A stretch of DNA of 64,000 nucleotides from Macrostomum lignano (taxonomy: Eukaryota), in NCBI GenBank assembly GCA_002269645.1, contig NIVC01004010.1, positions 44,756 to 108,755 of the forward strand. Reading direction: 5' to 3'. Under the pieces are notes generated by a model. It worked only from the letters and a program-made list of their open reading frames with translations, searched no databases and was not told the DNA's origin. Positions 28,272 to 63,866 of this stretch are shown piece by piece. Position numbers and translations under genes: made by a program. Position 1 is the first letter of the stretch. Every line of letters starts with the position of its first letter.

Positions 28272-28487
28272 TGTAATCCTGGCTAATGTGTTCATATTTC
28301 TATCCTTGTTGGAAAATCCTAACTAAATTCTTGTCAGTGGGTGACTTTTTGACAAGAAATAATTTTGCTAATAAATTGCATTGTAAAATAAAACAGTGTA
28401 GGTTGAAGTTAGGTTTAAGAGTTCCATATGGGTCCTCTCGCTAGTATTAATGATCTATAAAGTTCTGTACTTGACGATGATTTGCAG

Positions 28488-29072
28488 TCTCCAGCACCAC
28501 TAGGAGGTGGCAGAAGCTGGCAGCAGCTGCTGCACTCTGGCCAGCGGGCCCTGCCGCAGCCGGCCCTGCTGCTGGGCCCAGTGACCCGTGGATTCCAGCG
28601 CGGCCGTCGGCTGGGCTTTCCAACCGCAAATCTGGCATCAGACGCACTGGTGGATGCTGACCGATTGCCCAGCCATGGCGTCTACTGCGGCCGCGCCGTG
28701 CTGCTTGATGAAGCTGCAGCTGAAGCTGGCAGCTTGAGGAGTTATCGATTCACGGGGCCATCCCTGCCAGCCATTCTGAGCTGGGGCTCGAACCCGCAGT
28801 TCGGGCTGGACAAGGCACTGTTTGAGGTGCACATCATCCACTGGCCGGCCAGCCAGCCCGCAGAGTTCTATGGCCGCACCCTGGCCTGCCTGGTGACTCA
28901 CTACTTGCGGGATGAGGCCAGATTTCCCGGCGGCATCGATCAGCTGACCGAAGCAATTCGATTGGACCTGCTAGTTGCTAAGGCGTTGCTAGGGCCACTT
29001 GCTGATGCACAAGATCGACAACTGAAGGATCGGTTAGTCCGTCTGGAGACTGCAGCTGCCAGCAAACTGTGA
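28488..29072 (+). CDS. RFK: Riboflavin kinase (coding exon begins at acceptor tttgcag; no in-frame ATG)
   Basis: GPVTRGFQRGRRLGFPTANL, GVYCG, SWGSNPQF, FEVHII, EFYG, YLRDEARF, AIRLD. Confidence 0.88.
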   Translation, partial: SPAPLGGGRSWQQLLHSGQRALPQPALLLGPVTRGFQRGRRLGFPTANLASDALVDADRLPSHGVYCGRAVLLDEAAAEAGSLRSYRFTGPSLPAILSWGSNPQFGLDKALFEVHIIHWPASQPAEFYGRTLACLVTHYLRDEARFPGGIDQLTEAIRLDLLVAKALLGPLADAQDRQLKDRLVRLETAAASKL

Positions 29073-30342
29073 TTGCAGTGCAGCTAACTGCTTTTTTAGT
29101 CCATCTATGAATGAACTGGAATCGGCACAAACTGTTTTCATGTCAGACGATGCAACAAGTTTCAACAACCTGCAACATACGAATTTCAGAGATTGCTTGT
29201 TTTTCTAGTAAATTAACTATTTCCTATGTTAATTTAGATTATTTGAAACAAGTTTGCTAGTCATTTAAACCCCTAGAATTGTTTTTCCGGATTTTATTTG
29301 TATTGTTACCATAGACAAATCACACCGATGTAGAGTAGAAGTAACCAGGATTGGTCGATGGCAATCCTGATGTCAGATCTCAGGACTAATTGACGTAAAT
29401 AATTCATACTCCACGTTAGGAGATTGGAGAGTTTTAGACAGAGTATAGACCACAGTTTATAGAATCTGTGGTATAGACAGAGTTCGGGATTGAAACTTCA
29501 GCATGTTGCTAAGTGTATATTTAACATCCTAATTGTTACAGAATATGTCTGATTCAATTGGCTCTTCTGCAACCTTCCCCAGTGCTTTTAACTCTGTAGT
29601 CTATGGTAAACTCCTGAAGTACATAACAAATCCCGCAAAAACGTCACTTAATTGTGTATCATTTTTTGGTGCTATTCAATTTATAAAGGCCATGAATCGA
29701 GTCATTTAGAGCCGTTTGAACCAGGTTAAGCTTGACCAGAATTTATCCATTTTGCCTTGAATCATAAAACTGTTCCATCTGGGAACTGCTCTAGACGCAA
29801 CTCAGTGATTCTGCAATCTGCATAGATTCGGATACGACTCTATGGCCCCAGAGTCGCAGACAATAAAACTCCTCTAATTGGCTCTTAGGCGACTCTTTGA
29901 CAACTATTAGCGTATTATTCAATCATTGCTAGCAACTGTATTGCCTACGGTATTACAAAATGTTCATTTTTTGAAGAAAAGAATTCAAACGCGCCCTGAT
30001 TTTTTCATTAGATTATCATGAACTTTTTATTACAAAGGCCACTTTCAATTATGCGATTGGTGTTGGGTTTAAATAGATAGTACCTGTCTTAATGCATTAT
30101 AGAATAATTTTTAGCATTTTCTAGTGCTTTTTACATTCATTAAATAAATTTTTATGAATGATTGAAATATCTGGGACCTTTTTTGCTCTCCTTTGAATAT
30201 ATTGATTTATTGCTTACTTGTTAGCTAGCTAGCTTGATAGTTGATTGAGCAAATAGAGAGCTCTTAAAATTTAGAGCAGCACTTCCTAGTTGATTTGCCG
30301 GCAATTTACCTGGTTATCCTCGTTGTTGCTGCCTTTGCGAGC

Positions 30343-32516
30343 ATGGACTCGGGTGGCAAGGGTTCGACAGCGGAGGAGAGCGGCGATGCTCTGAATCTGG
30401 CCGTTGTCTCGAAGCCCTGCTCAACTGATCAGCCAATCGACCTGTCGAAGCCTTCTCGGTCATCGTCAGGAATGAACTCTGCAGAGACGCAGCCTTCTCG
30501 GTCATCGTCAGGAATGAACTCTGCAGAGACGCAGCCTTCTCGGTCATCGTCAGGAATGAACTCTGCAGAGACGCAGCCTTCTCGGTCATCGTCAGGAATG
30601 AACTCTGCAGAGACGCAGCCTTCTCGGTCATCGTCAGGAATGAACTCTGCAGAGACGCAGCCTTCTCGGTCATCGTCAGGAATGAACTCTGCAGAGACGC
30701 AGCCTTCTCGGTCATCGTCAGGAATGAACTCTGCAGAGACGCAGCCTTCTCGGTCATCGTCAGGAATGAACTCTGCAGAGACGCAGCCTTCTCGGTCATC
30801 GTCAGGAATGAACTCTGCAGAGACGCAGCCTTCTCGGTCATCGTCAGGAATGAACTCTGCAGAGACGCAGCCTTCTCGGTCATCGTCAGGAATGAACTCT
30901 GCAGAGACGCAGCAGCAGCAACAAGAGCAGGACTCATCAGTCGAAGCAGCCGGTAGTCACGAAGTGTCCAGTTCGGCTGAACCTGCCAAGCCGACTGATT
31001 CGACAGACTGCAAAGCGAAGCCGCCATCGACTGCGGCTCAGGAATCGCAGTCTGAGAAGGCTGAGCCGCCGACTGCTTCAGTTGCTGCCGACAAGGCGCC
31101 CATTGTGTGCAAGTTGTGCAAGGTGAACTGCAGCTCGCTGCACAACTACAAAATGCATCTGGACGGCAGGCAGCACCGGAAGGCCGCCGCGTTTGCCGGC
31201 ATTGTTGTCAGGGAGAACGTCAGGCTGACTGCTGAGTCGGATTCCCGTTCTGCTGCTTTGGTTTCATTTGGAGAGGCTGCACCGAAGGCGAAGGTGAGGG
31301 AGCGCTTCGGTGTGGATTGGTGCTACTTGGCATGTTGGTCCTTTTCATATCAGAGGCAGCGGCTGTGTGCACCCTGGCGCACTTGAAGCGACATTGTCAC
31401 GAAACCGGCGAGAGGCATTGCTGCCCATTTCGCCGACTCCCCTGAGCAGGCACACACACATGAGTGTACAGCGGCCCTAACTTTATTTATCTTTAGGCAT
31501 TTAGACTTCGCTGCGCCTTGGGGATTGGCCCTCAGGGGCGTTAATTGCACGAGCAGAGCCAAGCCGAGCTTCCAGTTTAGCCCCAAGTTAATGCGACCGC
31601 ACTTGGATTCGAACCTCTGGCACATCAGAACGCTGCGCTAGACCACTGGACTACGGCCCCTCAATTTGGTCCTTGCAGATAAATAACCCCACCTGTACTT
31701 ATTATTTCTGGGAAAGTCATTATTAATTTTAATATGAAGTTTCAATAAGAAAAAAGTTTAGCTACAGGTGTCATGCCTGTACGTCCATGTAGGTGATTCA
31801 ATTAGTAGTTTGTTGCATGTTGCAGCTTTCACCAAATTATGTCACGGAACAGTCTCAGAAACTGGTTGCCACATGGGACTCTCTGTATAGCTTATCTGGC
31901 TATTAGTAAATTATTACATAGTCTGACAGTTTGAAATAGTAACTTTTCGGGCATTTACAACATTATTAAGATTACCTTGTTGAACTTTAAAAATTGTCAG
32001 CCAGAATCAAGATTATAGCAAGTGGTAGAGGGCACTGCCCCCTTATTAGCCAGAGCTGAAGTATTCAACGCGAACCTTTGTCCGCAGAAAGCCCCGCCGG
32101 ACTTGTCCGCCGCGACCTCATCGACGTCAGCAGGTCCGAGTGCGTTTCACTGCGACGTGTGCAACATCGACGTGACGGGAGCTGAGAACCTCAAAGCGCA
32201 TTACGCGGGCAAGAAGCATCGCAACGCCGTTGCCGGCTTGGAGAAGCAGAAAAATGATCAACAGGATCGGCAGTCTGCAGAGCTGCGGTGCGAGATTTGC
32301 GACCTGAAATTCGCCGGCCCGTGCCCCTATAAGGATCACATGCAGGGCAGGAAGCATGCTGCCAAGCTTCGCGAACTCGATGCGATCCGAGATCTTGAGA
32401 AGCAGGGCTGCTTGCCGAAATCCAGCTTGAGCAGCGGCAAGCGCTCGACGACAGACGATGGCGACGGAACGTCGACCGCATCTGTCAAAAAATGCAAGAT
32501 TGACAAGATTGATTGA
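30343..32516 (+). CDS. Protein with three U1/matrin-type (JAZ-like) C2H2 zinc fingers and an N-terminal 14-aa tandem repeat (exons ~30343-31293, 32088-32516)
   Basis: CKLCKVNC...HLDGRQH, CDVCNID...HYAGKKH, CEICDLK...HMQGRKH; donor aag|gtgagg and acceptor ccgcag both phase 0 (donor choice uncertain). Confidence 0.8.
30449..30912 (+). repeat. Coding 42-bp tandem repeat, 11 identical copies (PSRSSSGMNSAETQ)
   Basis: atgaactct recurs every 42 bp from 30472 to 30892. Confidence 0.95.
31481..31660 (-). mobile_element. tRNA-derived SINE, second family (in the zinc-finger gene intron)
   Basis: Minus strand ggggccgtagtccagtgg (A box), ggttcgaatcc (B box), A-rich tail taaagataaataaag. Confidence 0.65.
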
Positions 32517-35215: not shown

Positions 35216-36954
35216 ATAGCTATATCTTTATAAATGAAGAAAAACTAATTTGGAAAAATTGATGATTTTTTCTTCTGGCTATTCTATTTCCAACAATCCA
35301 ACTGCATGATATGCTGTATTTTAACTCAAACTTTCATTACTTGTGCGTAGCAGTGATGGTGGCAAGCAGGTGGTTCAAGTGGTTGTCTGGGTCTACATCT
35401 GGATTTGTAGAAATATTGATTAAAACATTTCAATTATAATTTATTACATTTTATGGTATCATTTTTATTGATTTTGGTAAAGCAGAAGAAACTTGGTTTT
35501 TTTAATTCTTATTCATTCTATTCTTATTCTTATTCTTATTCTTATTACTCAGCAAAATGGGGGTGATATATCCCCATACCCCCTTAGGTACGCTACTGCT
35601 TATATCAAACCCCCTTAGCTTTGGTTCACAATCATTTATAGGCCATATATTTATCCCATTTAAATGATTATAAATGAAATAGATATATAAGATCTTCTTT
35701 AACAAAAATTTCTAGAAAATGAAATGATAAGAGTAAAACCCCCTATGGCTTCAATTTACAATAATTCATGATCACATATACAACAAAGGTACTTGCAATT
35801 ATTTAGCCTGCATCAACATATATCCCAGCATATATGACAGTGGAAAATTTTCAGCTTATATCAAAATTGTCTTTTCTTAGTGCACATAGCTAAAGCAAAA
35901 GTGCATAATTTGTTGTAAGTTTGTTGCTCTACATAAATAATGAATTCAATAATGAAAAAGCATAAAACTTTGGTGTGTAAAATTGAAAACATTTTTAGTC
36001 CTGGTGTATAAATGTGGTCCCTATAATTTTTCTCCCATTGGATATGGTGTATACTAATGCATGTTCCAAACTATGGGTCATGTTTTTGGAGAAAAAATAA
36101 GTCCCATGGCCAGTGTAAATCAGGGGGTTGCACATGCATATTGCATGACATATAATGTTCTAGATCATGATTGAAATGATTGATAGTAATATACAAGCCT
36201 GCATAAAACATAAGCTAAAACACAAAAATATTGCTTGTATAAAAGACAACAATAAATGGGCTATTAAATAGAAGCATCAAGTTTTTTAGCTTTGCATAAG
36301 AAATTTTTGTTTACTCCTATCTTGTGGCCCTGTGTAGGCTTATTCAGAGGCTAACTTGTTATCTAGCAGTTTGTTAAGCATGTTCAAAATGCATGCTTGA
36401 ATTGTTTTGCCACATAGATGCCTAATGAGAAAATACTACAAAGATAATTTGGGTACTAAATGAATAAGCAAGTCAATGAATTTTAATTTCATATTTAATA
36501 TTGTCTATTATAGATTTTGATCAAAGGCCTTGAATGCCAAAATCAATAGCTACCAGAATAACACCTGCCAGCCTAGCTAAATTAAGGTTAATAAATTATA
36601 AAAATCAAATTGAACTTCCTTAATTTTGCATATTTGTAAGAATAAAAGTGACAAAACAGGCAATTTATCTTGAAAGAGCTCATTAAATTTTTATTTGAAA
36701 TTGCTTCTAATAGAAATTTATTGTTACATTTATGTTGCATTTTTATAATTGGACAAGATACAATTATTTTGAGTCATTCCTAAACTTACATGGACTATTG
36801 TTTAGCACTTGGAAATGAAGCTTATGTGGAAATCGTCAACTTGCTTCTCCTTATGCTCCTGCAAAAAGTCATTAATCAACTGCTGAGAGTAAAGCCGCAG
36901 CAGCTGCACAATAAGTGCATTTGGAACCAGTATCAGTTATTCAGAATTGCAAGC

Positions 36955-37305
36955 ATGTCCGTTAGTAGTGCAACTACTACTAACAGCCACTCAGTAGTAT
37001 ATGTGACTGTGCCGAATCAGCAGGTTGGTGAAAAATTGGCCCGCGGTTTGGTTGGGGAGCGGCTGGCGGCCTGCGTGAACATTGTGCCCGGGGTCACCTC
37101 AGTCTACGCCTGGGAGGGCAAGGTTGAGCAGGACAGCGAACTGCTGCTCATCATCAAGACTCGCACTGGCCTGCTCTCCAGCCTCACTGACTATGTGAAA
37201 GCCAATCACGACTACGATGTACCGGAGGTGATTTCTCTGCCTATTCAGGATGGCCTGCCAGCCTATCTGAACTGGGTTGACAGCTCCACGAAGGAGCCGG
37301 CTTAA
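36955..37305 (+). CDS. CUTA: CutA divalent cation tolerance protein homolog
   Basis: VVYVTVPN, LARGLVGERLAACVNIVPGVTSVYAWEGKV, ELLLIIKT, HDYDVPEVISLPI, YLNWV. Confidence 0.95.
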   Translation: MSVSSATTTNSHSVVYVTVPNQQVGEKLARGLVGERLAACVNIVPGVTSVYAWEGKVEQDSELLLIIKTRTGLLSSLTDYVKANHDYDVPEVISLPIQDGLPAYLNWVDSSTKEPA

Positions 37306-37525
37306 GACTGTTTGAAAATGCTTACTTATACTTAGCCTTGGCTTTGATATGATCGAAATATACTACTTAGTTTTTGTGCTTTATCTCTATTCAAGTGTCT
37401 TGTGTTATTTATAAACAGGTAGTTTTGAGATTTGTCGATTCTGGCTCATGTACACTGATGTGCTCGCATGTCTGTCTCTTGTGAGTTATCAAAACAGTTG
37501 CTGCACTGTCTTTAGGGTCACAGCG

Positions 37526-38103
37526 TGTGTCAGTGACACACCAGCTTTCATTTTGTGTCACAGTGTGTCAGTGACACATCAGCTTTCATTTTGTGTCACA
37601 GTGTGTCAGTGACACACCAGCTTTCATTTTGTGTTACAGCGTGTGTCAGTGACACACCAGCTTTCATTTTGTGTTACAGCGTGTGTCATGACACACTAGC
37701 TTTCATTTTGTATTACAGCGTGTGTCAGTGACACATCAGCTTTCATTTTGTGTTACAGTGTGTGTCAGTGACACACCAGCTTTCATTTTGTGTTACAGCG
37801 TGTGTCAGTGACACACCAGCTTTCATTTTGTGTTACAGCGTGTGTCAGTGACACACCAGCTTTCATTTTGTGTTACAGCGTGTGTCAGTGACACACCAGC
37901 TTTCATTTTGTGTTACAGCGTGTGTCAGTGACACACCAGCTTTCATTTTGTGTTACAGCGTGTGTCAGTGACACACCAGCTTTCATTTTGTGTTACAGCG
38001 TGTGTCAGTGACACACCAGCTTTCATTTTGTGTTACAGCGTGTGTCAGTGACACACCAGCTTTCATTTTGTGTTACAGCGTGTGTCAGTGACACACCAGC
38101 TTT
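37526..38103. repeat. 40-bp minisatellite between CutA and TTLL1
   Basis: Unit gtgtgtcagtgacacaccagctttcattttgtgttacagc, ~14 copies, with an imperfect internal palindrome. Confidence 0.95.
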
Positions 38104-38209
38104 GCTTTAGGTCAAAGTGACCATTGCTTGGCTTTCATGAATAGCGTGCATCGCACATTCCATAAGACGAGTTAACAATCGAATCATTAACATTCGCTAC
38201 TAAAAGTAG

Positions 38210-42721
<4,512 letters not shown>

Positions 42722-42774
42722 AAATGCAAACTGTGATACTCAAACTACTGTAATGTCTCACTTCTCTTATCCCC

Positions 42775-43065
42775 TTACTGTAGCTCTTCTCCCTCCCCAT
42801 CTCCCATCTATTCTCACTACCCATCTCCCATCTATTCTCCCTCTCCATCTCCTATCTATTCTCCCTACCCATCTCCCATCTATTTTCCCTCCCCATCTCC
42901 TATCTATTCTTCCTCTGAATCTCCCATCTATTCTCCTCATCTCCCATCTATTCTCATCTCCCATCTATTCTCCTCATCTCCCATCTATTCTCCCTCTCCA
43001 TCTCGTATCTATTCTTCCTCCCTATTTATCTATTCCTTTCTCCGTAACTCCTATCTATTCTGTCT
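42775..43065. repeat. Pyrimidine-rich degenerate repeat (ctcccatctatt) downstream of the TTLL1 stop
   Basis: Direct reading. Confidence 0.85.
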
Positions 43066-44290: not shown

Positions 44291-44357
44291 CGATCAAGCA
44301 CCGGAGACGCTGGCATTTCAAAAAACAACACTGCCAAATACCATTCTTTAACCGCAG

Positions 44358-50300: not shown

Positions 50301-53300
50301 AGAGATACTTGGCTGAGATTGGAGATACTTGACTGAGAGTAGAGATACTTGGCTGAGATTGGAGATACTTGGCTGAGATCGGAGATACTTGGCTAAGATC
50401 AGAGATGCTTAGCTGAGATTAGATTTCGTATAGTACGGTTGAGACTGGAGATACTTGGCTGAGATTTGAGATGCTTATGGTTGAGATTAGAGATATCTTG
50501 CCGAGATCGGAGATACTTGGCTGAAATTAGAGATAATAAAGGTAGAGATTAGTCTACTGCCACTAGGCACTGAGTACACGGAGGCAGCCCCGCCCCCAAC
50601 TCCCCGCAGGTGCACAATCTCTCCAGCCTGCACCGCAGCGCCAACTCGCTGCACGGTCACATCCTGCTATGTCAGCGACTGGCCCTCGGCCTCTCCGGTC
50701 ACCAGGACCTGTCGGTCATCCTGTCCGTCATTGTCGACCTCCTGCTTGTGCTCATCACCTTTAAGAGCTGGTTCCTAGCTCGCGAGAGTCTCCGACTGCT
50801 CCGCCTCCTGATGAAGCGCCACGACCCCGGCGTCAGCCTCAACCTGCCAAACAGCCTGGCGCCGACTGGGAAAGCGGCTCCGCCCGACATCTTCTTCGAC
50901 ATGTTCGACCAGGAGCTCACCGAGCTGTCCATGGAGCACCCCAACATCTTCGAGAATGTCCGCTGGGACCCCGGCTACCTGTTCAAGTCGCTGGCCGCCA
51001 GCTCCGAGGAGACCACTCAGCACTTCCTCACCCAGCAGGACCAGCTGAAGGAGCAGCGGATGAAGCTGGCTCTGTCTGGCCGGCGCGGGGTCACCGAGGA
51101 CATGCCGAAGGCCGTCTGCTCGCCGCAGGACCTCATCGACTATGCGATTGGGCAGCCGCCTGAGCAGTGTCTCACCAGCAACCTGGCCGTCAGGGTGCTG
51201 GCTATGCTGGTCACCTATAATCAGGGATTCTTCGCTACCGGGTATCTCAAGGCAAGCATCCGGAAATAAAAAATTCAGATTTATTCTAGTTCAAGTCACA
51301 GTCTGCTGTCTGAGACTCACCATCTCAAAGCCGAGAATCCCAATCCTCAAGTGGAGAATCCCAATCGTGAGTAGAGAATCCTGGGAGCACCCAGCTGGCA
51401 CAGATCACACCCAGCTGGCACAGATCACACCCAGCTAGCACAGATCACATCCAGCTGGCACAGATCACACCCAGCTGGCACAGATCATACCCAGCTGGCA
51501 CAGATCACACCCAGCTGGCACAGATCACACCCAGCTGGCACAGATCACACCCAGCTGACACAGATCACACTCAGCTGGCACAGATCACACCCAGCTGACA
51601 CAGATCACACCCAGCTGACACAGATCACACACAGCTGGCACAGATCACACCCAGCTGGCACAGATCACACCCAGCTGGCACAGATCACATCCAGCTGGCA
51701 CAGATCACACCCAGCTGGCACAGATCACATCCAGCTGGCACAGATCACACCCAGCTGGCAAAGATTACACACAGCTGGCATAGATCACACCCAGCTGGTA
51801 CAGATCACACCCAGCTGGCACAGATCACACCCAGCTGGCACAGATCACACCCAGCTGGCACAGATCACATCCAGCTGGCACAGATCACACCCAGCTGGCA
51901 CAGATCACATCCAGCTGGCAAAGATCACACCCAGCTGGCACAGATCACACTCAGCCGGCATTCTGTATCTCCGCTTCAGTGTCTGCCTGGCGCAGCTCAC
52001 CAGCTGACCTTGCAGTGACCTCTAGCGGTCGAAAGAATGCTAAACTAGCTGGGGCTTCGCTGCCCTGCTAAGCACAAATCGTTGGTCAATTGGCTGTGTT
52101 TGGTTCCAATTGGCCTGGTGTTGCTTTGTACATTGCTCTCTGTTTCATTAACAAAACGTATGGCAATATGGTGTCCATTTCTTTTTCATTGTGTCAAATT
52201 TCCCGAAGTTTCGTCGGGTTGGAGATAAACTAACGTTATAGATAAAGATACAGTTCTTGACCTGCATAGGGATTTTTGACTTGGGATTTTAGCTTCGCCA
52301 TTAAATTATTGACTTTGAGGTGGGGTTCTTCATTCTGAGATGAGATTCTTGACTTTAAGATGAGATTCTCGACTCTGAGATGACAATCTTGACTCTGAGA
52401 TAAGATTTTCACTCAGAGATGAGATTCTTAACTCCGAGATGAGATTCGTAACGCTGAGATGAGATTCTTAACTCTGAGATGGGATTCTTGACTCTGAGAT
52501 GAGATTCTTGACTCTAGGATGAGATTTTTCACTCTAAGATGAGATTCTCGACTCTGAGATAAGATTCTTGACTGTGAGATGAGATTCTTGACTCTGAGAT
52601 GAGATTCTTGACTGTGAAATGAGATTCTTGACTCTGGGATAAGATTCTTAACTCTGAGATGAGATTCATGACTCTGAGATAAGATTCTTTACTGTGAGAT
52701 GAGATTATTGACTTTGAGATGAGATTCTTGACTATGAGATAAGATTCTTAACACTGAGATGAGATTCATGACTCTGAGATGAGATTCATGACTCTGAGAT
52801 GAGATTCATGGCTCTGAGATGGGATTCTTGGCTTTTAGAAAGTATTCATAAATCTGTATTTATCGGGATTCCCTGTTTGTGGATATGAATGCCTCAACCT
52901 TACCAGCTGGCATCTTGTCTTCAACAACAGGAGTACCTGGCCTTCATCAGCGACCAGCTTCGTCAGCTGCCGTCCGACTGCCCGAGCGAGCGGTTCTCGT
53001 CGCTGATCCTGCTGCAGAGCCACCTGGTGAACACGCTGTTCGACAAGGCCGCTTGCCAGGACCTCCTGGCCTACCTGAACCGCTTCTCCGACTACTCGAT
53101 CAGCGAGGACCTCCGCCTGTCGGCCGCCAACGCGCTGCTGATTCTGGTGAGCGGCCGGCTGTGGGCGCAGAGCCGGGCCCAGACTGAGGACGAGCGAGTC
53201 CGCGAGATCCTGTTCCGCATGCTGTTTGACGAGTCCACGGCTGTGCGGGTGCTGGCCTGCTCCATCGTGTACCGCTGCGGCTGGCTGCCCGCCCTGTCCC

Positions 53301-55578
53301 ACCACCGCATCTCCGGCCTGGCGCTCACGCATCCCATTGTGGCCAGGCCGGCTGGCGCTAAGGAGCTGGACGCCGGCACGACTGCGACTGGCTGGTGCGC
53401 ACTCTGGCCGGCCTGGTGCAGCGGATGTCCACCGCCTGCCGGCTGCGTCTGCGCGAGTGCCATCAGCAGACCATGTACCAGCGGGAGGAGGCCAATATCT
53501 TTGTGGAATGGCGCTACCTCATTGAGCTGTGCTTCTACAAGCTGTATCTGTCCGCTCCCGTGAGTTTTTTGTGCTCACTGTCTGAGAATGCCAGTTTTTT
53601 TTATGTACCACAACTTCTATTCAGAATTTCCCAGGGATTTCTGTCCTGAGTCCGAGAGTCCCGATCCCGCTGATCCCGAGTATATCTAGCTGGCACAGAT
53701 CACACCCAGCTGGCACAGATCACACCCAGCTGGCACAGATCACACCCAGCTGGCACAGATCACATCCAGCTGGCGCAGATCACATCCAACCGGCGCAGAT
53801 CACATCCAACCGGCGCAGATCACACACAGCTAGCAAAGATCACACCCAGTTGGCACAGATGATGTCAGATCACACCCAGCCGGCACAGATCACACACAGC
53901 TGGCACAGATCACACCCAGCTGGCACAGATGATGCCAGATCACACCCAGCTGGCATAGATCACACCCAGCTGGCGCAGATCACATCCAACCGGCGCAGAT
54001 CACATCCAACCGGCACAGATCACACCCAGCTGGCAAAGATCACACCCAGCTGGCACAGATCACACCCAGCTGGCACAGATCACACCCAGCTGGCACAGAT
54101 CACATCCAGCTGGCAAAGATCACACCCAGCTGGCACAGATCACACCCAGCTGGCACAGATCACACCCAGCTGGCACAGATCACACCCAGCTGGCATAGAT
54201 CACACCCAGCTGGCACAGATCACACCCAGCTGGCACAGATCACACCCAGCTGGCACAGATCACACCCAGCTGGCACAGATCACACCCAGCTGGCATAGAT
54301 CACATCCAGCTGGCAAAGATCACACCCAGCTGGCACAGATCACACCCAGCTGGCATAGATCACATCCAGCTGGCAAAGATCACACCCAGCTGGCACAGAT
54401 CACACCCAGCCGGCATTCTGTATCTCCGCTTCAGCGTCTGCCTGGCGCAGCTCACCAGCTGGCCTTGCAGTGACCTCTAGCGGTCGAAAGAATGCTAAAC
54501 TAGCTGGGGCTTCGCTGCCCTGCTAAGCACAAATCGTTGGTCAATTGGCTGTGTTTGGTTCCAATTGGCCTGGTGTTGCTTTGTACATTTTCATTAGTTT
54601 GATTTATATGTGCTTACGGACATAATAACATATATGCATCGGGCATTCTGTATCTCCGCCCCTGTGTCCAGCTGCTGAAACTGCACCAAGTGACCTTTTG
54701 GCGGTCGAACGAATGCCAGATTAACAAAGCCTCGCATGGCTTGGCTGTGCGCAAATCGTTGGTCGAATTAGGGCTACCCGCCTAATAGCCGTTCGACCTG
54801 GTGTTGCATTGCACACTTGCTGGTGTAGAAAATAGCCATTGAATTCATTTCTATTTGCTACTTGCTGCTCAGTAGCATGTAAAGAATTTTGTAGCCATTT
54901 TTACTGAATGAGTGTTACGAGTGGCATTTATTAATTTCTCGTGAGCTTTCTCCCATTAAGGCCTCAGACTTTTAAACTTCTATAGACTGAGCAGTTCTTC
55001 TGTAGGGGTTGTGGCCTAGTGGTTAGGAGCGTCAGACTCACGACTGGAAGGTCGAGGGTTCGATTCTCGATCCACTCGGAACAATTTGTGTCCTTGAGCA
55101 ATAAATACTCTGCATTGCTTCAATCCACCCAGCTGTAGAATGGGTGCCAGCATTAGCTGAGGTAATTGAGGGTTGAATTGAGGACCCCCCAGTCCTTGGA
55201 CTGAACAGCCGTACGCAGCCTTCAGATGCGCCGCGCAATAGCTGCGGCTGAGCTGTCGGTTGCTGTGCTTTTATCAATTATTAAACTATTATTATTGTAT
55301 AATAAGCTACTGGAAGTAGTTTATGCGCACATCTGATGTCCTCCCAAACTCTTTCATCCAACACCCAGACGCTGGACAAGCAGGAGCGGGCCCGCATCGG
55401 CGAGTCCCTGGCCGACATTCGGGTGCAGCTGGCCAACGCCTCGGCCAGGGGCGACAGCGCCGAGGCTGCCTGGCCGAGCAGCCTGGTGGACTCGGCAGTG
55501 ATGGAGCACTCGGCTCCGTTTCATGCCATGCTGTACGCTGGCCGGCTGTGCGACCTGCTGATTGGCCAGCTTTGCTAA
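44358..55578 (+). CDS. THADA: THADA / Trm732 homolog, ~1650 aa (exons 44358-44489, 44596-44698, 45019-45950, 46015-46641, 47147-47797, 48375-48908, 49503-~49988, 50610-51251, 52907-53559, 55369-55578)
   Basis: DUF2428-region motifs SRHRGTIE, VTRRSAGLP, KVHALNLLR, WAVRN..QLLGAL..R..G, EFFSAYPRL, C-terminal EEANIFVE; exon phases reconcile except for one 1-nt frameshift near 53385. Confidence 0.88.
44915..44990. repeat. (AGTC)n microsatellite
   Basis: Direct reading. Confidence 0.9.
46655..47095. repeat. ~40-bp minisatellite in a THADA intron
   Basis: ataatcccactctggaaatcccaagatcccgtatattctca variants. Confidence 0.9.
47835..48270. repeat. 31-bp minisatellite in a THADA intron
   Basis: aataacccataatcctcgattctgaaatccc, ~14 copies. 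Confidence 0.93.
49010..49395. repeat. ~20-bp minisatellite in a THADA intron
   Basis: ccccaatccatcagagaatc variants. Confidence 0.92.
50185..50535. repeat. 20-bp minisatellite in a THADA intron
   Basis: gagatacttggctgagattg variants. Confidence 0.9.
51390..52135. repeat. 20-bp satellite (cacagatcacacccagctgg) plus ~180-bp unique cassette, copy 1
   Basis: Near-identical module at 53690-54590. Confidence 0.92.
52335..52830. repeat. 20-bp minisatellite
   Basis: gagatgagattcttgactct variants, ~24 copies. Confidence 0.93.
53690..54590. repeat. 20-bp satellite plus ~180-bp cassette, copy 2 (diverged cassette-only copy at ~54640-54815)
   Basis: cggcattctgtatctccgcttcag...ggtgttgctttgtacatt shared with 51957-52135. 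Confidence 0.92.
55006..55295 (+). mobile_element. tRNA-derived SINE, same family as 15332-15632, copy 2
   Basis: A/B boxes, same central block, 3-prime 78 bp identical to copy 1, (TTA) tail. Confidence 0.88.
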
Positions 55579-57562
55579 TTTATTACTTTCTTCATAATTT
55601 AATTTGCTGCATTTTTGTTACTTTGAGCTGAGCTGCTAAAGCTCCGCTTTGGTTGCCTTGCTTGATATATAATCTGGTCTTTCGGCCACTTGAGCCTGGA
55701 AACCGCATCAGAATACATAGCAACTGCATGGTAACAAAATAGTAACCGCATAGTAACGACATAGCAACAGCAACAACCGCATAGTAACGGCATAGCAACC
55801 GCATAGTAACGACATAGCAAGTGCATAATAACGACTAAGCAAGTGATAGGACTTGAGAATTCTTGCAAATATTAGCATAATTGCCACTTTAAATCCCGCC
55901 GCCCCTTATAATAATTTCATCCAAACTTCTTTCTTATTTTTATCATGGAAATTGTGTGCCCCAGTGTTGTGAGCTACCAGCTATCGCTTACCGTAGTTTT
56001 CATAATTTATGATGATATGTAATAATGATACTGATAATGAGTATGCTGTACCTCATTTTCTTATCTATGGCTCCAATTTCGTCGCTACGCAGGTGAACTG
56101 TTAAATTCTGCGTCAAATTACTGATTTAAGCCCGAGGCTTCAGTCCGGAACCGATCTGCTTGGGTGCCTGCATTTGGTAATAATTCTAGACCACAATAGC
56201 AAGCGGCACCTAGAAGTCTTGACTTGAATCGCTTTATTCATTATGATATTTAATTTCGTGTCATATTTATGAATATTACTAATAAAATTTTTCTAGTATA
56301 TCCCTGTGCGTTTCTGTTTTTTCTTCATGCTTCTCGTAACTCTTGTGACCCGCTTATCAATTAGCTAGAGAATTCAATATATTTACTCAAACGCTTTTTG
56401 AACTTCGCTTTTTCATCCGTTTAATCTAAACGTACATGTATTTGCATCGAGACGATTCACTTTAAGCGTGTTTCATCTGCTTATTGTTAAATAAAACTAT
56501 CGACTCTGCCTGGTTAAATATATATGTTCATAAATGCCTCCCGTGGTTTGAGGTAAAAAACATTAAATAAATCGAAAGAGCATAAATCTGTCGTTTTCAC
56601 ATTTAATCGAAGACAGGTCCAGGTGACAACCGTAAAGAAACTTTCGACTAAGTTATCATTATATCGATTTTTCCATCGTTTTTACTAAGCAAAGTACCGA
56701 CAGCCAAGGGGATATGCATTCATTGGCTTCAGCTACATGAACTAGTATGCATGTTATTGTGCATTAATTATAAAAACCTTTGCGATTAGCATTGCATATT
56801 TGAGCTTCTGATGCCAGTTAGCTTAAATGGCTTATTAAAAATCAACGTAAAACCGTAACAACGTAACAACGTAAAATACAAATCAGGAAGTTATTTTTTA
56901 GAATACATGAAGGGTCTCCATCTCACTATTTAAAGCTTGAAAAAAACTGGCCGAGTTTGCGAATTAGAAATGCAGAACTAAAACAAAGTTTTAAAGTTAA
57001 AAGATAAATTTAACAGTAACAATAAAATATATTACAAGATGTAAAGTATTGTTTTTAATACTAAAGATTCTCTCATTCTACTACGCATTATGTATTCTAA
57101 TGCTTTGCATTTGAATTTGCGTATGAGGAAGTTAATTTTTGTAATGGTAAATTTGTATTATCGATTTGGATTAGATGGTCCATCCAAGCCCTGAAAGAAT
57201 AACACCACATGAGTGACGACTCATAGCGTCATGACTAAAATAACACTACCTACTTTTAGGTATGGTTTAGAAATAAATTTAGAGCACTTAGTCTTTTAAA
57301 AAAGTTGTTAAGTAGTCCTTGCATAATTGTTATTGTATCTATCTATATATTCTATTTATCTGGATTAGGCCTATAAAACTATATAGCTAGAACTTAAAAA
57401 TGCTTAATCAGGATATATATTTATAATTTTAACATCAATGTACTTTTGGGCCTGAGGATAAATGACTTTTAAAAAGTTATCTTGTTTTTCATATTTAAAT
57501 TATGAATATGTGTTTATAGGCCCCCCTAGCACTATGGTAAAGTTGCACGTCTGAGAAAAAGT

Positions 57563-58862
57563 AGAATTAAGGTGAGCGCTATCATTTTTTATGCAACATG
57601 TTTCGCCTCGCATCAGGCATTGTCAGGCTCTTAAAATTAGTAACAATTTATTTGTTTATTTATATTTAACAATTAACACTAAGAACAGGTCGATAAAAGT
57701 CAGAAATGTATATAAATTAACAGTAGATTGTACAGTCCCACGAAGCGCTCACAGAGTTGCAATGAGGGGAGAGAGAGAGAGAGTGAGATGAGCATAAGTG
57801 TACACCTAGAATACTCTAATCTCTAAGGAGGGCATTGGCACCATGATTGGCTGGCAAGTTGTTTATTTAGGATTGGTTTACGCAGTTTTATATATAGGGC
57901 TTCAAGCAGTCTGTACTCATTTGAGCATGTATGGATGGTGGAAAAGTTTTTATCTATTTGGCTGTCACAGCATTCTTTGCATATCATCAGGTGGTTGTGC
58001 ATAGCCAACATCTTTTGCCTATGTTCTCTACTTCTCACATATAGGTATCGGGTAGTTTCACCTATGTGGGTGATACTCTGGTCGCCAGGGAATTAAAATT
58101 AATAAACAACACCTGCCTGTAAGGAGCTGGGAATGCGGCATTTCAAATTCTTAACAAATTGACCAATTTTCTTGCAACAGAAAATGACCATGAGCTTCAC
58201 ATTTAAATACTTATTAAATGCTCTGATGACATGCTTGGGCGCAACCTTGGGATTCACTCGGCCGTTTCTATTGGCAACACACACGTGTATGTCGCTATTG
58301 GACATAATAGTAGTCACGTGACTGCTCTCAGCCAATAGCGACTTACATGTGTGTGTTGCCAATAGAAACGGCCGGGTGATTCCCAAGGTTGCGCGCGTAT
58401 GTCTGATGAGGTTCTTTTTAAATGAACAGAAGCACGCCCATAGAAAAGAATGGAGATATGGGTGCAATCAGTCCTTAGATCTTTCGATTACCACATTAGG
58501 AAATTCATTGATGGTAAAGTCGCGAAACCTAACAATAGACAAAATAATGAAGAATAGAAAGATCTGAGGACTGATTGCCCCCATATCTCCATTCCTTTTT
58601 ATGGGCCTGCTTCTGTTTATTTTTTTCCTCTCTCTCTTTCCCTCTCTCTCTTTCTCTCCCCTCATTGCAACTCTGTGAGCACTCCATCAGACTGTATATT
58701 CTACTCTTATTTATATACATTTCTGACTTTTATTGACCTGTTCTTAGTGTTAATTGTTAAATATAAATAAACAAATAAATTGTTACTAATTTTAAGAGCC
58801 TGACGATGCCTGATGTGAGGCAAAACATGTCGCTTAAAAATGATAGTGCTCATCTTAATTCT
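57563..58862. mobile_element. Foldback-like element: ~230-bp diverged inverted arms with two internal hairpins
   Basis: 57563-57790 is the reverse complement of 58640-58862; internal palindromes at 58239-58394 and 58437-58605; no TSD identified. Confidence 0.6.
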
Positions 58863-59689
58863 GTTTATAGCACATTTATTTTTTCCAATGTCTGTTAAAT
58901 ATATATGTGAAACTGTAACTGGCAACCAATATCAATATGGCTCGTATAAATTATATTAGACTATAGTTGCAAAATAACAACCCTAAAATAAGAAAAAAAG
59001 AAGAGGAAAAAAGGCATAAAGAAACAAAGTTAGAAAACACAATAAAATTAAAAGAAATAAAAACAAAAGGTTGCAAAAAAGCAAACTAAGGTTGCATTTT
59101 GGTCAAGACAAAGTTGCAAGCAAGACTGATATATAGTTTTAGAGTTTATATATATTATATATGCTTTTAATTAAACTAGGCCTATCAATTGACATTAAAT
59201 GCATACAATTTTTATGCTACACAAATAGGCATACTAACATAACTTTATAACTTGATGGCATACTTGGTATATACCTAAACTTTTGCCCAAAAACTCTGGC
59301 ATACATGGGACACCTTCCTGACAGTATCTTAGTGTGCTTGTTACTAAAATATGAAAGTATATATAATGTCTACTCATATTCATTATTAAATGTCTTTCAT
59401 TATTGATTATTATAGTTAAATTTGCTCATATATATGCAGTGCAGTACTTGAAGTAAGAATACAAATAATTCAAAATGATATTAGTTTCACTAATTATAGA
59501 ATTACCATGTACAAAAGTCAAAATAATTTTGAATATATTACAAATCTGAGACATTTAATGCCATTTTCAATCATATTTTTAACACCTGTGATGCATTTTT
59601 GCTGGTCTTTATAATGCTTAAATAGACTCCATGGGACAAGTTTCTTGCATTACATTTTTAGTATATGTACTAGCAATCAGTGCCTCCTG

Positions 59690-60720
59690 TTGGGGAGCCT
59701 AAAAAATGCAGTACAAGTTGTTTTAATAAACTACATGTAGCGTCTCTTTGCATTTTACCCCAGCAGTCCCTTGTAAGTCTTGACATGTCAGCAATTCCTC
59801 CCACAAGCCTTAACATATCAACTCCCCCCTTGACATCTCAGCGATGCCCTTATAAGCCTTGAAATCTTAAAAAAATCTGTCTACTTTCTAACCCTAGCCT
59901 AACCCTAACCCTAAAGCATTGAAATTTCAGTAATTCTCTCAAGAGTCATTATAGCACTACTACAGCATTATAGCGATTCCCTGCAAGCCTCGACATCGTA
60001 GGGATTCCCAAATGAATCTCTTAACTTTGACATGAAGCTTCTTTTATTTTTACATTATGCTTTTTTTATCAGTGATCCCTCCCATGAGGAGCCAACAAAT
60101 AATGTATTAAAAAGTTTTCAATAAACTACATGTAGCTTCTGACTTTAGCCTTGACATCTCATTTATTCCCCTGTGAGCCTTGAATCTCAGCTATTCCCCC
60201 ATAAGCCTTGACATCTCAGCTATTCCCCCCATAAGCCTTGACATGTCAGCGATGCCCCTCATAAACCTTTAAATCTAAAAAATCCCTGTTAACATTGAAA
60301 CCCGCTAAAATCTAACCCTCAACCCAAACCTGACCTAAACCTAACTTTAACCCAACCTAAAGCCTTGAAATCTCAGCAATTCTTTTCCCCTAAGCCTTGG
60401 CATTTTAGTGATTCCTTCTTTAAGAATCACAGCGCTATAACGATTCCCTCCAAGCTTTGCAATCGTAGCAATTCCCAAATGAATCTTTTAACTTCGACAT
60501 GACTTTTCTTTTATGTATACATAGTGCTACTTTTATTTTTTACATGACTCTTCTTCTATCAGCGCCCCCCCGTGGCGAGCCAACAAAGAATGTAATAAAA
60601 AATTGAGTAAAGTACATGTACTTTGAAGTAGCTTCTGACTTTTGCTTTGACATCTCAGAAACCCCCCCCCCCCGTAATCTCAGTTATTCTCTGTGAGCCT
60701 TGACGTCTCAGTAATTCTCC
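59690..60720. repeat. Diverged tandem repeat (~400-480 bp units, ~2.5 copies) with telomere-like TAACCC motifs
   Basis: Recurrent gagcc.a.aaa.aatg...aaactacatgtagc...ccttgacatctcag blocks at ~59690, ~60085, ~60570; aaccctaacccta at 59891-59913. Confidence 0.6.
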
Positions 60721-60931
60721 CCAGCACAGCACAATAGCTTCATTTAATTTTTACATGACGCTTCTTTGATTCTTCCATGATGCTTCTTAACTTTAGTTTT
60801 TCGAATATTTAATCCCTTTAGCATTGACCGATTTCTTAGCGAGATTTAGTATATTTGAATTTATTTAATTGTAATAAACTGTCATTCTTAAACACTTCAG
60901 CAATCTGGTATATCTGATACAGCAAATTGAA

Positions 60932-62037
60932 ATGCTTGTGGAGTACGAGAACAGTGACTCGGAGTCCGAGTCAGACGCTGAACAGCAGCAGCAGAAACAG
61001 GAGGAGAAGAAATCTTCAGCCAGGCAGGCGCAGAGGAGCCGGCAGGCACTGACACTGAGGAGGCGCCCGTCATTTCGCGATGACGAAGCCGAAACAGTCC
61101 AGAACGATGCGGAGCGCCAGCAGGAGGCGGCGGCGGGCGGCGTCGAGGCAGCCGATGGCCTGGCCGCGATGGCAGCCGCGGACGACACTGTGGAGGAGAA
61201 TCTGCGAATGCGCGTTCCCGCGTCGCCCAGGCGCCAGCGACATCCGGGTCGGGGACTTCGGCGGAGCCAGCAGCCGCGGCGGCCGAATCGCTGGCTCAGC
61301 AGAAGCAGCAAAGACAGAAGCAACAGCAGCTGCTGCTGCAGCAAAAGCGCCGCCGACTTCTCCTGTTGGAACGAGCGCTGCCGCCAACGGCGCTGACGAG
61401 GACGACGATGAAGACGACGAGGACGCGGTCAAGCGTCGCCGGATCGCGTCGGCCGCCGCCGCCGGCCAGATGCGCGGCGCCACGTCACTGCTGGCGCAGC
61501 TGCCCAAGCCCAAGGCGCTGGCCGTCCGCGAGGGCGCCGGGCGCGTCTTCGTGCCGCCGATGCGGCCGACAATCCGGCCACCGAGTCCGCCGGCGCGAAG
61601 CTGCCAGCGGCGACATCTTCGATGGTGGATGACGAAGCGCCGTTTGCCGCGGAGCCTGCCGACTCCAACCTGCCGCAGCAGCAGAGCCTTCTTGGCGCCG
61701 TCTGCCGCCCAGCGAGCTGCACCGCTACCGCCAGGCCACCGGCGCCTCGCTCACCGCCGACGTCGCCGCTGACGCTGGCAGCGGCGGGATCATCGACATC
61801 CGACAGTCTGACCAGGTGGCCGGCGCCGAGCTCGAGCTGACGAAACAGTTAACTCGCAACGCCGGCGCCGATGCAAGGCACAAGCCGGAAGGCCCCGAGC
61901 CCAGCTCGATGGCGAAGCGGAAGCACCAGATCACCTACCTGGCCTATCAGGCCAAGGAGCGCGAGCTGGAGCTGAAAAACTCCTGGTCTGACGCGCGCTT
62001 CAATCAGCGGAGCAGTCAGAGGAAGTACGGCTTCTGA
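60932..62037 (+). CDS. PRCC: Proline-rich mitotic checkpoint control factor PRCC homolog (about three apparent frameshifts)
   Basis: N-terminus MLVEYENSDSESE; LLAQLPKPK; C-terminus KRKHQITYLAYQAKERELELKNSWSDARFNQRSSQRKYGF* matches the PRCC domain. Confidence 0.88.
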
Positions 62038-62384
62038 TTGGCCGGACTGTGGAGTTGGTTACTTTTTTGCTTGCATTTTATGTCTCTGCGGGTAGCGTGT
62101 CTTTTGCTTTGTATGCCTCGTATATTTGCGGTATAGAATAGAGTCTTAGCAACCGGGAGTTTAGGCGTCCTTGTATAGTGCAAATATGGAATATATTCTC
62201 ATGCTAAACGTTCATGTTTTCTATTATTGAACTGGAAATCTATTATATTTCGTGTGCAACTCTGCTTTCTCGTAACATTGCTCTTTAGCTGCAGTAGTTG
62301 TGTGTCATCATTTTTGCGCGAATTCAAACTGCCGAAATAAACACTGATTGCAGTAAAGCATTTTTGTCTTATGACTCAATTAGA

Positions 62385-63055
62385 AATCGCCCTTAGACTT
62401 CAATTAGGAATCGCCCTTAAAGTAGAGTCGAGGTAAGGTACATCGTTTGATAAAAGCCAGGAGAACGAAAGCAAAAACGAACATTCGCATTTTTTCTTTA
62501 ATACGATTATTTTCTTCAACTTAATAAAGAAAAATATGCGAATGTTCGTTTTTGCTTTCGTTCTCCTGGCTTTTATCAAATCGCCCTTAGGCTTCAATTA
62601 GAAATCGCCCTTAGGCTTCAATTAGAAATTGCCATTAGGCTTCAATTAGAAATTGCCCTTAGGCTTCAATTAGAAATCGCCCTTAGGCTTCAATTAGAAA
62701 TCGCCATTAGGCTTCAATTAGGAATCGCCATTAGGCTTCGATTAGAAATTACCCTTAGGCTTCAATTAGGAATCGCCATTAGGCTTCGATTAGAAATTAC
62801 CCTTAGGCTTCAATTAGGAATCGCCCGTAAGGCTTCAATTAGGAATCGCCCTTAAGCTTCAATTAGGAATCGCCCTTAGGCTTCAATTAGGAATCGCCCT
62901 TAGGCTACAATTAGAAATTGCCATTAGGCTTCAATTAGAAATTGCCCTTAGGCTTCAATTAGGAATCGCCCTTAGGCTTCAATTAGGAATCGCCCTTAGG
63001 CTTAAATTAGGAATCGCCCTTAGGCTTCGATTAGAAATCGCCATTAGGCTTCAAT
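62385..63055. repeat. 24-bp minisatellite ending at the acceptor of the claudin-like gene
   Basis: cttcaattaggaatcgcccttagg variants, ~20 copies. Confidence 0.93.
62446..62580. other. Near-perfect hairpin, ~55-bp arms with ~25-nt loop
   Basis: tttgataaaagccaggagaacgaaagcaaaaacgaacattcgcat... and its exact inverse, with one indel. Confidence 0.93.
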
Positions 63056-63089
63056 TCACCAGCTCATCCGCACCCCGAACTGCTGCACA

Positions 63090-63866
63090 ATGAAGGCGCT
63101 CCAGTCGGACAACCGGCAGCGCCACCTCATGTTCCACCTGGCCCTGCTGTTCTGCTGCGTTGCCATGGTAACCTATTTCTTAGCTTTCGTATCGCCGCAC
63201 TGGCTGGAGTCGCAGCCGGAGTATCACAGCCACTTCCTGCGCATCGGCCTGTGGGAGGTCTGCTTTGACGGCTACCTGCACCCCACAGACTACGTGTCCA
63301 AGGCCTACTTCGGCTGCTGGTACATCTACTTCCCGGAGTTCTCCCGCATCAGCGGCTGGCTCATCCCACCCTGGTACTACGCTGTGCAGATGCTGGGCAT
63401 TGTCGCCTTCATCTCCATCCTGCTGTCCACCATCGCCATGGGCTCGCAGTTTGTCCGCGTGCTGAATCGCGACTCAAAGCGCTGGCTGCGGGCCAACACG
63501 ATTTTCCACCTGCTAGCCGGCGCCTGCATCGCCTTCCAGCTCATTGTGATGGCCATCCAGAGCCGCGACCGCCGCTGGATGCCGCGGCCCGACCAGAACC
63601 GGCTCGGGTTCGCCTACGCCATGGCGCTCATCGCGTGCCTGGCCTGCACCTTCACCGTCGGCTTCCTTGCCATGATGTACATCAAGGAGGACGAGGAGCA
63701 GCTCGTCTTCAGCGACGTCACCGACGCCGGCCCTGACATCGGCGCGGCAGCCGCGTCCCAGCCGATGGGCGGCTACGGCGGTGCCAGCGGTCAGGACAAA
63801 TTTATGGAGGCCGGCGGCGGTCGATATTTTGTCGGCGGCGGCGGGCAAAGCGACAGCGCCGTTTGA
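63090..63866 (+). CDS. Invertebrate claudin-like protein (PMP22/claudin superfamily, Pickel/Megatrachea-Kune type)
   Basis: Four TM segments; W-LES...GLWEVCF...GCW signature; WMPRPDQNRLGFAY before TM4. Confidence 0.85.
   Translation: MKALQSDNRQRHLMFHLALLFCCVAMVTYFLAFVSPHWLESQPEYHSHFLRIGLWEVCFDGYLHPTDYVSKAYFGCWYIYFPEFSRISGWLIPPWYYAVQMLGIVAFISILLSTIAMGSQFVRVLNRDSKRWLRANTIFHLLAGACIAFQLIVMAIQSRDRRWMPRPDQNRLGFAYAMALIACLACTFTVGFLAMMYIKEDEEQLVFSDVTDAGPDIGAAAASQPMGGYGGASGQDKFMEAGGGRYFVGGGGQSDSAV

Follow-up and report, generated by a model that had tools for sequence, protein, structure and literature searches.

A co-oriented run of putatively trans-spliced housekeeping genes with candidate two-gene operons in the genome of Macrostomum lignano

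Introduction

The flatworm Macrostomum lignano carries a single 35-nt spliced leader (SL), CGGTCTCTTACTGCGAAGACTCAATTTATTGCATG, which ends in ...TTGCATG, and both SL trans-splicing and operons have already been published for this species (Wudarski et al. 2017, PMC5730564; Ustyantsev & Berezikov 2021, PMC8629364). About 30-39% of its genes are trans-spliced and multi-gene precursors make up about 7% of the assembled transcripts (PMC5730564, PMC8629364). The trans-splice acceptor follows the motif [T/C]TNCAG, about 15% of the genes have been assigned to operons, the largest operon holds nine genes and the modal distance is about 100 nt (PMC8629364). Genes were assigned to an operon there if they lie on the same strand, if the downstream gene is trans-spliced and if the distance after subtraction of repeats is below 1 kb; about 60% of the trans-spliced genes lie outside the assigned operons (PMC8629364). 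Operon spacers are inflated by repeats, and units based on RNA-seq tend to break in repeat-rich spacers (PMC8629364). Here we describe a run of seven genes in the last 64 kb of contig NIVC01004010.1 (64,000 nt, called the window below; window position equals record position minus 44,755), namely RFK, a zinc-finger gene (ZnF), CutA, TTLL1, THADA, PRCC and a claudin-like gene. The contig measures 108,755 bp and belongs to assembly GCA_002269645.1, to which the claudin-like ORF and the annotated fragments of RFK and CutA are exact matches. An earlier note, made from the sequence alone, had proposed that these genes form one or several SL trans-spliced operons.

The published system of M. lignano is also the closest one for comparison, as species, SL and motif are the same and nothing differs in kind (PMC5730564, PMC8629364). 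Published operons of the species contain conserved housekeeping targets, mostly two or three genes, and have satellite-inflated spacers, and the same would hold for this locus. Unlike in the published operons, two of the six junctions exceed the 1-kb limit here, and at several sites the acceptor AG cannot be read in the reference sequence. The locus is not described individually in either paper, and its gene identifiers are absent from the full texts and supplements searched. Operons of Caenorhabditis elegans yield polycistronic precursors that are resolved by 3'-end formation and trans-splicing, as we propose here, with a modal spacing of about 100 nt and two-gene operons as the commonest type (PMC8629364). 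In C. elegans, SL1 marks first genes and SL2 downstream genes, whereas flatworms have no SL2-type marker of downstream genes, so that the leader says nothing about operon membership. The spacers considered here (0.9-1.3 kb) are also longer than those of C. elegans, and the CutA-TTLL1 and PRCC-claudin spacers consist mostly of minisatellite. In tunicate operons the genes follow each other almost without a spacer, unlike at the locus described here, where the spacers span hundreds of nt and contain repeats. Tunicates such as Ciona and Oikopleura resemble M. lignano in that monocistronic genes and the downstream genes of operons receive one and the same leader (PMC8629364). The use of the 3'-terminal AUG of a flatworm SL as initiator methionine is credited to work on Schistosoma mansoni (Cheng et al. 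2006, as cited in PMC9851317); at our locus, as judged from the sequence, the SL AUG would be in frame at RFK, CutA and the claudin-like gene, and at the latter two it would add N-terminal residues or replace them.

Results and discussion

Gene starts and spliced-leader acceptors

All seven genes most likely receive the SL, and for at least six of these conserved, co-oriented genes the 5' ends of the mRNAs would be made by trans-splicing of the single 35-nt leader. The putative acceptors before RFK (28488), CutA (36856), TTLL1 (38239) and PRCC (60901) fit the published motif; an acceptor at 30332 is deduced for ZnF, the putative site of the claudin-like gene near 63096 is off-motif, and THADA has no more than a candidate at 43665. 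We think it fairly probable that CutA-TTLL1 and PRCC-claudin are bicistronic, possibly with THADA after TTLL1, and that RFK, ZnF and each of the two blocks are transcribed from promoters of their own. The coordinates are collected in Table 1.

Table 1 Genes, putative acceptors and spacers of the run, in window positions. A slash marks the exon boundary. Distances were taken between stop codon and acceptor and are given both raw and with the tandem repeats found by TRF subtracted; all include the upstream 3' untranslated region (UTR), and transposons were left in.
Feature	Position	Strand	Raw distance (nt)	Adjusted distance (nt)	Remarks
RFK (Flavokinase)	28488-29072	+			Pfam, 7e-25
RFK, predicted trans-splice acceptor AG	28486-28487	+			gatTTTGCAG/TCTCC, exon from 28488; fits [T/C]TNCAG; identical in three copies
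RFK-ZnF			1259	1259	below 1 kb only if the RFK 3' UTR is longer than 260 nt (borderline)
ZnF, putative trans-splice site	30328-30331	+			exon from 30332; annotated 5'-partial coding sequence from 30334 in two copies
ZnF (zf-met/JAZ zinc finger)	30332-32516	+			Pfam
ZnF-CutA			4339	4297	above 1 kb
CutA, putative trans-splice acceptor	36853-36855	+			CAG in copy c3165, ATG in window and copy c0033; exon from 36856
CutA (CutA1)	36856-37305	+			Pfam, 2e-38
CutA-TTLL1	37306-38238		933	349	584 nt are a 40-bp satellite
TTLL1 (TTL)	38239-42721	+			Pfam; predicted acceptor ttatTTTTCAG/ at 38237-38, identical in three copies; ATG 38249
TTLL1 3' UTR and TTLL1-THADA spacer (to 43665)	42722-43664	+	943	707	below 1 kb; 24-bp satellite 42787-43022; AATAAA 43613, 43639
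THADA, candidate 5' UTR	43665-43768	+			candidate SL acceptor cattTTTTCCAG/AGCAAG (TTTTCCAG), motif match
THADA/Trm732-like gene (DUF2428)	43769-55578	+			Pfam, from 43769; annotated start ATG 43769
THADA-PRCC			5399	4923	above 1 kb
THADA-PRCC gap	55579-60900	.			AT-rich, small satellites; AATAAA 60873, 28 nt before the PRCC acceptor
PRCC, single exon	60901-62037	+			Pfam; predicted acceptor aacaCTTCAG/ at 60899-60900; ATG 60932
PRCC-claudin			about 1040	about 510	below 1 kb
PRCC-claudin spacer	62038-63062	+			AATAAA 62336; 24-bp satellite, 531 nt
Claudin-like gene	63063-63866	+			genomic ATG 63090; possible acceptors 63061-62 and 63094-95
Claudin_2	63090-63866	+			Pfam

The public annotation provides the transcript boundaries on which this assignment is based. 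Coding sequences (CDSs) in GenBank were obtained by cutting transcripts at peaks of SL reads and poly(A) and applying TransDecoder (PMC5730564). Six of the seven genes (RFK, ZnF, CutA, TTLL1, PRCC and the claudin-like gene) are annotated with "partial" CDSs which all begin without ATG, and their starts follow an acceptor-like AG, or one apparently overwritten, at a distance of 0-4 nt. Given transcript ends of this origin, a partial CDS without ATG should begin within two bases of the 5' end of its transcript, and we infer that the annotated boundaries are SL sites. There are 101 occurrences of [TC]TNCAG in 36 kb (0.0028 per nt). The motif ends 0-4 nt short of the annotated start at each of RFK, TTLL1 and PRCC, and also at CutA in the paralogous copy c3165. 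The probability that four of six starts coincide with the motif by chance is estimated at roughly 1e-6. The copies used for comparison were c3165 (NIVC01003165.1, L002), c0033 and c4266 (NIVC01004266.1).

By comparison, the rule that had led to the first set of sites, a YAG 0-27 nt before the coding start, carries no information, because 249 of the 467 ATG triplets between 28 and 64 kb (53%) satisfy it as well. All six YAG sites of the earlier note exist, at chance level. Two of its positions agree with the annotation, 28488 with the region in which the 5'-partial CDS of RFK starts and 38239 with the 5'-partial start of TTLL1 at 38240. None of the other four fits [T/C]TNCAG: 36945 lies 89 nt downstream of 36856, the annotated 5' end of CutA in three copies; 60923 lies 22 nt downstream of the 5' end that the paralog annotation gives for PRCC (about 60901-60905); 44358 is the cis acceptor of THADA intron 1; and 63063 is unsupported for the claudin-like gene, as paralogs have the start of its CDS at the equivalent of 63099 and the window model has to extend upstream of the in-frame stop at 63045.

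A dependence on the leader would be clearest at RFK. Its open reading frame (ORF) at 28488-29072 has 194 codons and zero methionines; an in-frame stop at 28458 is followed by no in-frame genomic ATG, and no upstream exon is annotated in any of the three copies. The SL AUG, if joined at 28488, is in frame, so that RFK appears to combine the two features of an slORF, namely the lack of a usable genomic start and the frame of the SL AUG. Because the ORF has neither a methionine nor an in-frame genomic ATG, RFK would need the SL AUG, which is, as judged from the sequence, its sole possible start codon. In the annotation, the 5'-partial CDS has its first base at 28497 for the window and at the equivalent of 28491 for two paralogs. 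The sequence TCTCCAG/ contains a further AG (28493-94) and thereby offers an alternative exon start at 28495, at which splicing would give the dead end AUG-CAC-CAC-UAG. Exact look-ups of RFK started by the SL AUG and of RFK from 28491 gave no match in a collection without transcript-derived copies. At the sites as revised here, the SL AUG would also be in frame at CutA and at the claudin-like gene, and out of frame at ZnF, TTLL1, the THADA candidate site and PRCC, where it would open upstream ORFs of 6-21 codons. Thus the SL AUG would serve as start codon for RFK, lie in frame for CutA and claudin and begin a short upstream ORF elsewhere.

At ZnF and CutA the acceptor AG cannot be read in the window. 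In ZnF, the four bases that precede 30332 read GCTG for the window, TCTG for c3165 and CATG for c0033, with otherwise identical flanks; all three copies have T at position -2, and c0033 spells the CATG of the leader. The ZnF acceptor at 30332 is deduced, because the AG is overwritten in all three copies. At CutA, c3165 reads CTTCAG/CTCCTG and the window and c0033 read CTTATG/CTCCTG, in which ATG corresponds to the last three bases of the leader. The equivalent positions in the paralogs are L002 18953-55 and L004 19781-83 and 11954-57. In both the window and c0033, 36856 is exactly the first base of the annotated 5'-partial CDS of CutA, an annotated exon in c3165 begins at the same base after cttctcCTTCAG, and the older independent gene model P0012 likewise begins with LLQKV. 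From an in-frame SL AUG, 36856-37305 would encode 150 aa including an N-terminal extension of 33 aa, whereas the internal ATG at 36955 gives 116 aa. Exact look-ups of CutA from ATG 36955 or 36790, in the collection named above, gave no match. The exons of ZnF, 30332-31293 and 32088-32516 (+), are the unique one-intron solution that gives the annotated 462 aa (P0020), and its genomic ATG at 30343 lies 11 nt past 30332.

The Mlig_3_7 assembly was polished by Pilon with RNA-seq reads mapped by STAR (PMC5730564). The overwritten AGs at ZnF and CutA are probably an artefact of this polishing, in which leader-bearing reads with mismatches would have outvoted the genomic AG. Polishing is favoured over conversion by mRNA because the effect fades away from the junction, while conversion would carry a longer tract of the leader. 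Overall, the window is closer to c3165 than to c0033, and the ATG shared at CutA does not follow this relationship of the copies. That the SL-like bases, ATG in two copies of CutA and CATG in one copy of ZnF, are real germline alleles we regard as very improbable. If polishing is the right explanation, the overwritten bases provide independent evidence for trans-splicing at 30332 and 36856.

Two further observations concern these genes. The 42-bp satellite at 30449-30913 is coding, lies in ZnF exon 1 and encodes a 14-residue repeat, of which the window has 11 units, c3165 25 and c0033 one; the protein has 462 aa in the window versus 322 aa in c0033. In c3165, a copy-specific GC-rich insertion of 312 bp (L002 17328-17639) lies 1.5 kb upstream of CutA and holds a 5' exon with a GTAAGT donor, which the annotation joins in cis to the CutA trans-splice acceptor, giving a "partial" CutA of 167 aa. 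It follows from this cis-splicing that the acceptor is functional and that, in this copy, transcription can begin well upstream of CutA.

Conventional mRNAs with cis-spliced non-coding first exons, and 5'-partial CDSs due to incomplete transcript assembly, would explain the gene starts without any trans-splicing. The cis-spliced first exon of THADA, the cis-spliced upstream exon of one CutA copy and the chance level of the YAG rule would agree with this explanation. It would, however, leave RFK with an ORF that has no methionine and no annotated upstream exon in three copies; it would also leave unexplained why the annotated starts of four or five genes coincide with a trans-splice motif that is rare, and why SL-terminal bases replace the AG exactly at two starts. 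The pipeline moreover set its boundaries with SL reads (PMC5730564). We therefore consider a locus without trans-splicing very improbable.

TTLL1 has exons at 38239-38424, 38827 to about 39149, about 41431 to 41809 and 42278-42721, and its annotated CDS (P0006, 443 aa) starts at 38240 with RKDMSKV, which implies a transcript from 38239. In intron 2 (39149-41431) no canonical GT-AG pair yields the annotated protein; the junction misses by a single base, and an error of 1 nt in the assembly is suspected here too. THADA begins with a 42-nt exon at 43769-43810 (MSSGIDKALRQVIN), which runs from ATG to AAT/gtgagt and is spliced in frame to 44358; intron 1 (43811-44357) holds a 44-bp satellite, and the later exons run from 44358, from 44596 to 44698, from 45019 to 45950 and from 46039 onward. 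The potential acceptor at 43665, located 26 nt after an AATAAA and conserved in three copies, is a candidate only for the SL site of THADA. In the window, the THADA model has 1637 aa and ends at 55501 in a shifted frame with a Pro/Arg/Trp-rich tail, versus 1663 and 1664 aa in paralogs that would end near 55578; the shift (about 55300-55578) is probably due to another indel in the contig. A tRNA-like sequence (GGGGTTGTGGCCTAGTGGTTAGG...GGTTCGATTCTCGATCC) lies at 55005-55079 between THADA exons and has a second copy at about 15330-15400. ARAGORN called neither copy, and the sequence is probably a tRNA-derived short interspersed element.

For PRCC, the annotation of c4266 (P0016, 378 aa, "partial") begins with LVYLIQQIEM, equivalent to 60905 in the window. 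Compared with the intact c4266 copy, PRCC in the window has six 1-nt indels next to runs of C or G, which look like uncorrected long-read errors, and the 230-aa "gene" annotated at 61080-61772 covers no more than the middle of PRCC, severed by frameshifts. The CDS of the claudin-like gene starts in two paralogs at the equivalent of 63099, just after AAG/63096. The window model starts at ATG 63090, which implies that its transcript reaches beyond the in-frame stop at 63045. The SL AUG would be in frame at 63096 and at 63063 alike.

Spacers and transcriptional units

The seven genes are supported by Pfam and by the public annotation, and every coding gene annotated at 28.5-63.9 kb lies on the plus strand, so that the genes are adjacent and on the same strand as the operon definition of Ustyantsev & Berezikov asks. 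The earlier note had stated that no minus-strand gene intervenes, and the annotation of the contig, from which non-coding and repeat-overlapping transcripts had been removed beforehand, indeed contains no minus-strand coding gene in between. ORFs in the gaps between the seven genes had no Pfam match. The sizes of the spacers and their partial filling with satellites are also as described in the note. By the spacing limit of 1 kb after repeat subtraction, three junctions lie within the range of operons, one is borderline and two are too long.

Prefixes of locus tags stand for clustered assembled transcriptional units (PMC5730564). CutA and TTLL1 share a prefix (Mlig012852g1, Mlig012852g2), as do PRCC and the claudin-like gene on one contig (Mlig023733g1, Mlig023733g2), whereas RFK (Mlig004108, Mlig025405) and ZnF (Mlig022682) have prefixes of their own. 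Older fused gene models (UniRef A0A1I8J2S9 and A0A1I8FZA3; P0010/P0012) contain the junction peptide TWKASVDVY, which is reproduced, as read by hand, if the end of TTLL1 at 42717 is joined to 43665-43674, an exon of 10 nt, and this exon in turn to 44358; the same models join CutA to TTLL1 from 37275 to 38210. The models count as no more than a hint of read-through RNA. We propose that CutA-TTLL1 and PRCC-claudin, possibly with THADA after TTLL1, are transcribed as polycistronic precursors with minisatellites in their spacers, which would be resolved by 3'-end formation and trans-splicing, and that separate promoters would most likely precede RFK, ZnF, the CutA block and the PRCC block.

Several points weigh against this proposal. 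The numbers after the g in the locus tags also count paralogous copies, as ZnF g1 and g2 lie on different contigs, and therefore a shared prefix means no more than that both genes fall within some assembled unit. Such units may also result from read-through or from overlapping UTRs. All transcript evidence consists of CDS coordinates and locus-tag names and is thus second-hand. At RFK (in paralogs), PRCC and the claudin-like gene, the annotated start is offset from the AG by 1-4 nt, and the AG at 63094-95 before claudin has a poor pyrimidine tract and does not fit the motif. Single A/T changes before a G are not enriched overall among the copies. An A-to-T change at the PRCC acceptor in c0033 is not counted as a leader imprint, since it lies in a more diverged stretch with a deletion and could be a real mutation.

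Each gene might instead have its own promoter and outron and be trans-spliced as a monocistronic RNA, with shared names due to read-through or overlapping UTRs that the assembler merged. The majority of trans-spliced genes in the species, about 60%, are outside operons (PMC8629364), the single SL of all genes is silent on membership, and raw spacers of 0.9-1.3 kb are long enough for a promoter. The c3165 transcript that begins in the insertion 1.5 kb upstream of CutA also points to independent initiation. On the other hand, two gene pairs have common unit prefixes on the same contigs, and the repeat-adjusted spacers of these pairs (349-527 nt, 3' UTR included) lie within the published operon mode. 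Fused models that use splice sites in the spacers, including the 10-nt exon at 43665, are easier to obtain with read-through RNA. We consider the absence of any operon at this locus rather unlikely.

The opposite possibility is a single operon of about 35 kb with one promoter upstream of RFK, resolved entirely by SL trans-splicing, with spacers laden with transposons and satellites. Strict co-orientation without an annotated minus-strand CDS inside, an acceptor-like site before every gene, and AATAAA 26-28 nt before the THADA candidate and PRCC acceptors would be expected from it, and operons of up to nine genes as well as the breaking of RNA-seq units in repeat-rich spacers have been reported (PMC8629364). 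AATAAA is expected about once per 400-800 nt at 34% G+C, however, and is therefore weak evidence. RFK, ZnF, CutA/TTLL1 and PRCC/claudin carry four different prefixes, the ZnF-CutA and THADA-PRCC gaps still measure 4297 and 4923 nt after repeat subtraction, and both vary among the copies by indels of 0.3-1.6 kb, like ordinary intergenic DNA. A single operon is thus quite improbable in our view. Of the claim of one or several housekeeping operons, the general idea of SL genes, some of them in operons, fits the organism, while one operon of all seven genes is unsupported. Polycistronic precursors of the two pairs, possibly extended to THADA, would fit the names and the adjusted distances.

Other sequence features of the spacers were noted. 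The CutA-TTLL1 spacer (plus strand) contains no AATAAA or ATTAAA, and TATAAA occurs at about 37409 and 38213. In the 24-bp satellite at 62578-63056 before the claudin-like gene, the unit includes an acceptor-like site, CCCTTAG/GCTTCAATTAG, which is thus repeated. At 35748 (35740-35760), a related single copy reads TATG in the window versus TAAG in four other loci. In the THADA-PRCC gap, inverted repeats of 221 bp, 91% identical, flank about 860 bp at 57563-58862; the structure is transposon-like and its ORFs have no Pfam match. At 59598-59605, two paralogs have a strong acceptor-like TTTTTGCAG/GTC and the window has TTTTTGCTG; the site precedes PRCC by 1.3 kb, is followed after 120 nt by an AATAAA, and could reflect a plain single-nucleotide polymorphism or an unannotated trans-spliced RNA. 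The changes at 35748, 42781 and 59605 were dropped as leader imprints for want of an overall enrichment of A/T changes before a G. Strand skews do not distinguish introns from gaps and are uninformative on transcription through the gaps.

Boundaries of the locus

Upstream, the cluster is bounded by a divergent minus-strand gene of an ASC channel with its CDS start at 19199, followed by retrotransposon debris. One retrotransposon fragment within the 9 kb that separate the ASC channel gene from RFK (26364-27242, minus strand) has an ORF with an integrase zinc-binding domain (H2C2). Downstream, a convergent minus-strand gene follows 2.4-3.3 kb past the claudin-like gene in the paralogous copies. 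An Rfam scan of the window found neither an SL RNA nor any other RNA family, and no stretch of at least 12 nt of the SL sequence is present in the window or the paralogous loci. A 9-nt match to the SL end at 36139 occurs in all copies; it is expected by chance and was not taken as a signal.

Conclusions

The basis of the proposal, SL trans-splicing with resolution of polycistronic transcripts in flatworms, has been published for this very species and assembly. The locus is an ordinary, already known feature of the genome, of a kind established for the species, and since the public annotation has already cut it into genes, the biological weight of our analysis is small. As a site finder, the search for a YAG just before an ATG fails here, and the published motif together with annotated boundaries performs much better. 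The apparent leader bases in the reference would mislead splice-site surveys, motif discovery and the design of guides or primers at exactly these positions of some strongly expressed trans-spliced genes. Should the SL-like bases at CutA and ZnF against expectation be germline alleles, the leader AUG would have been hard-wired, for example by conversion from an SL-bearing mRNA, and trans-spliced copies would have turned into conventional genes with the same N-terminus. RFK, finally, would be a clean example of a gene that is untranslatable without the AUG of its leader.

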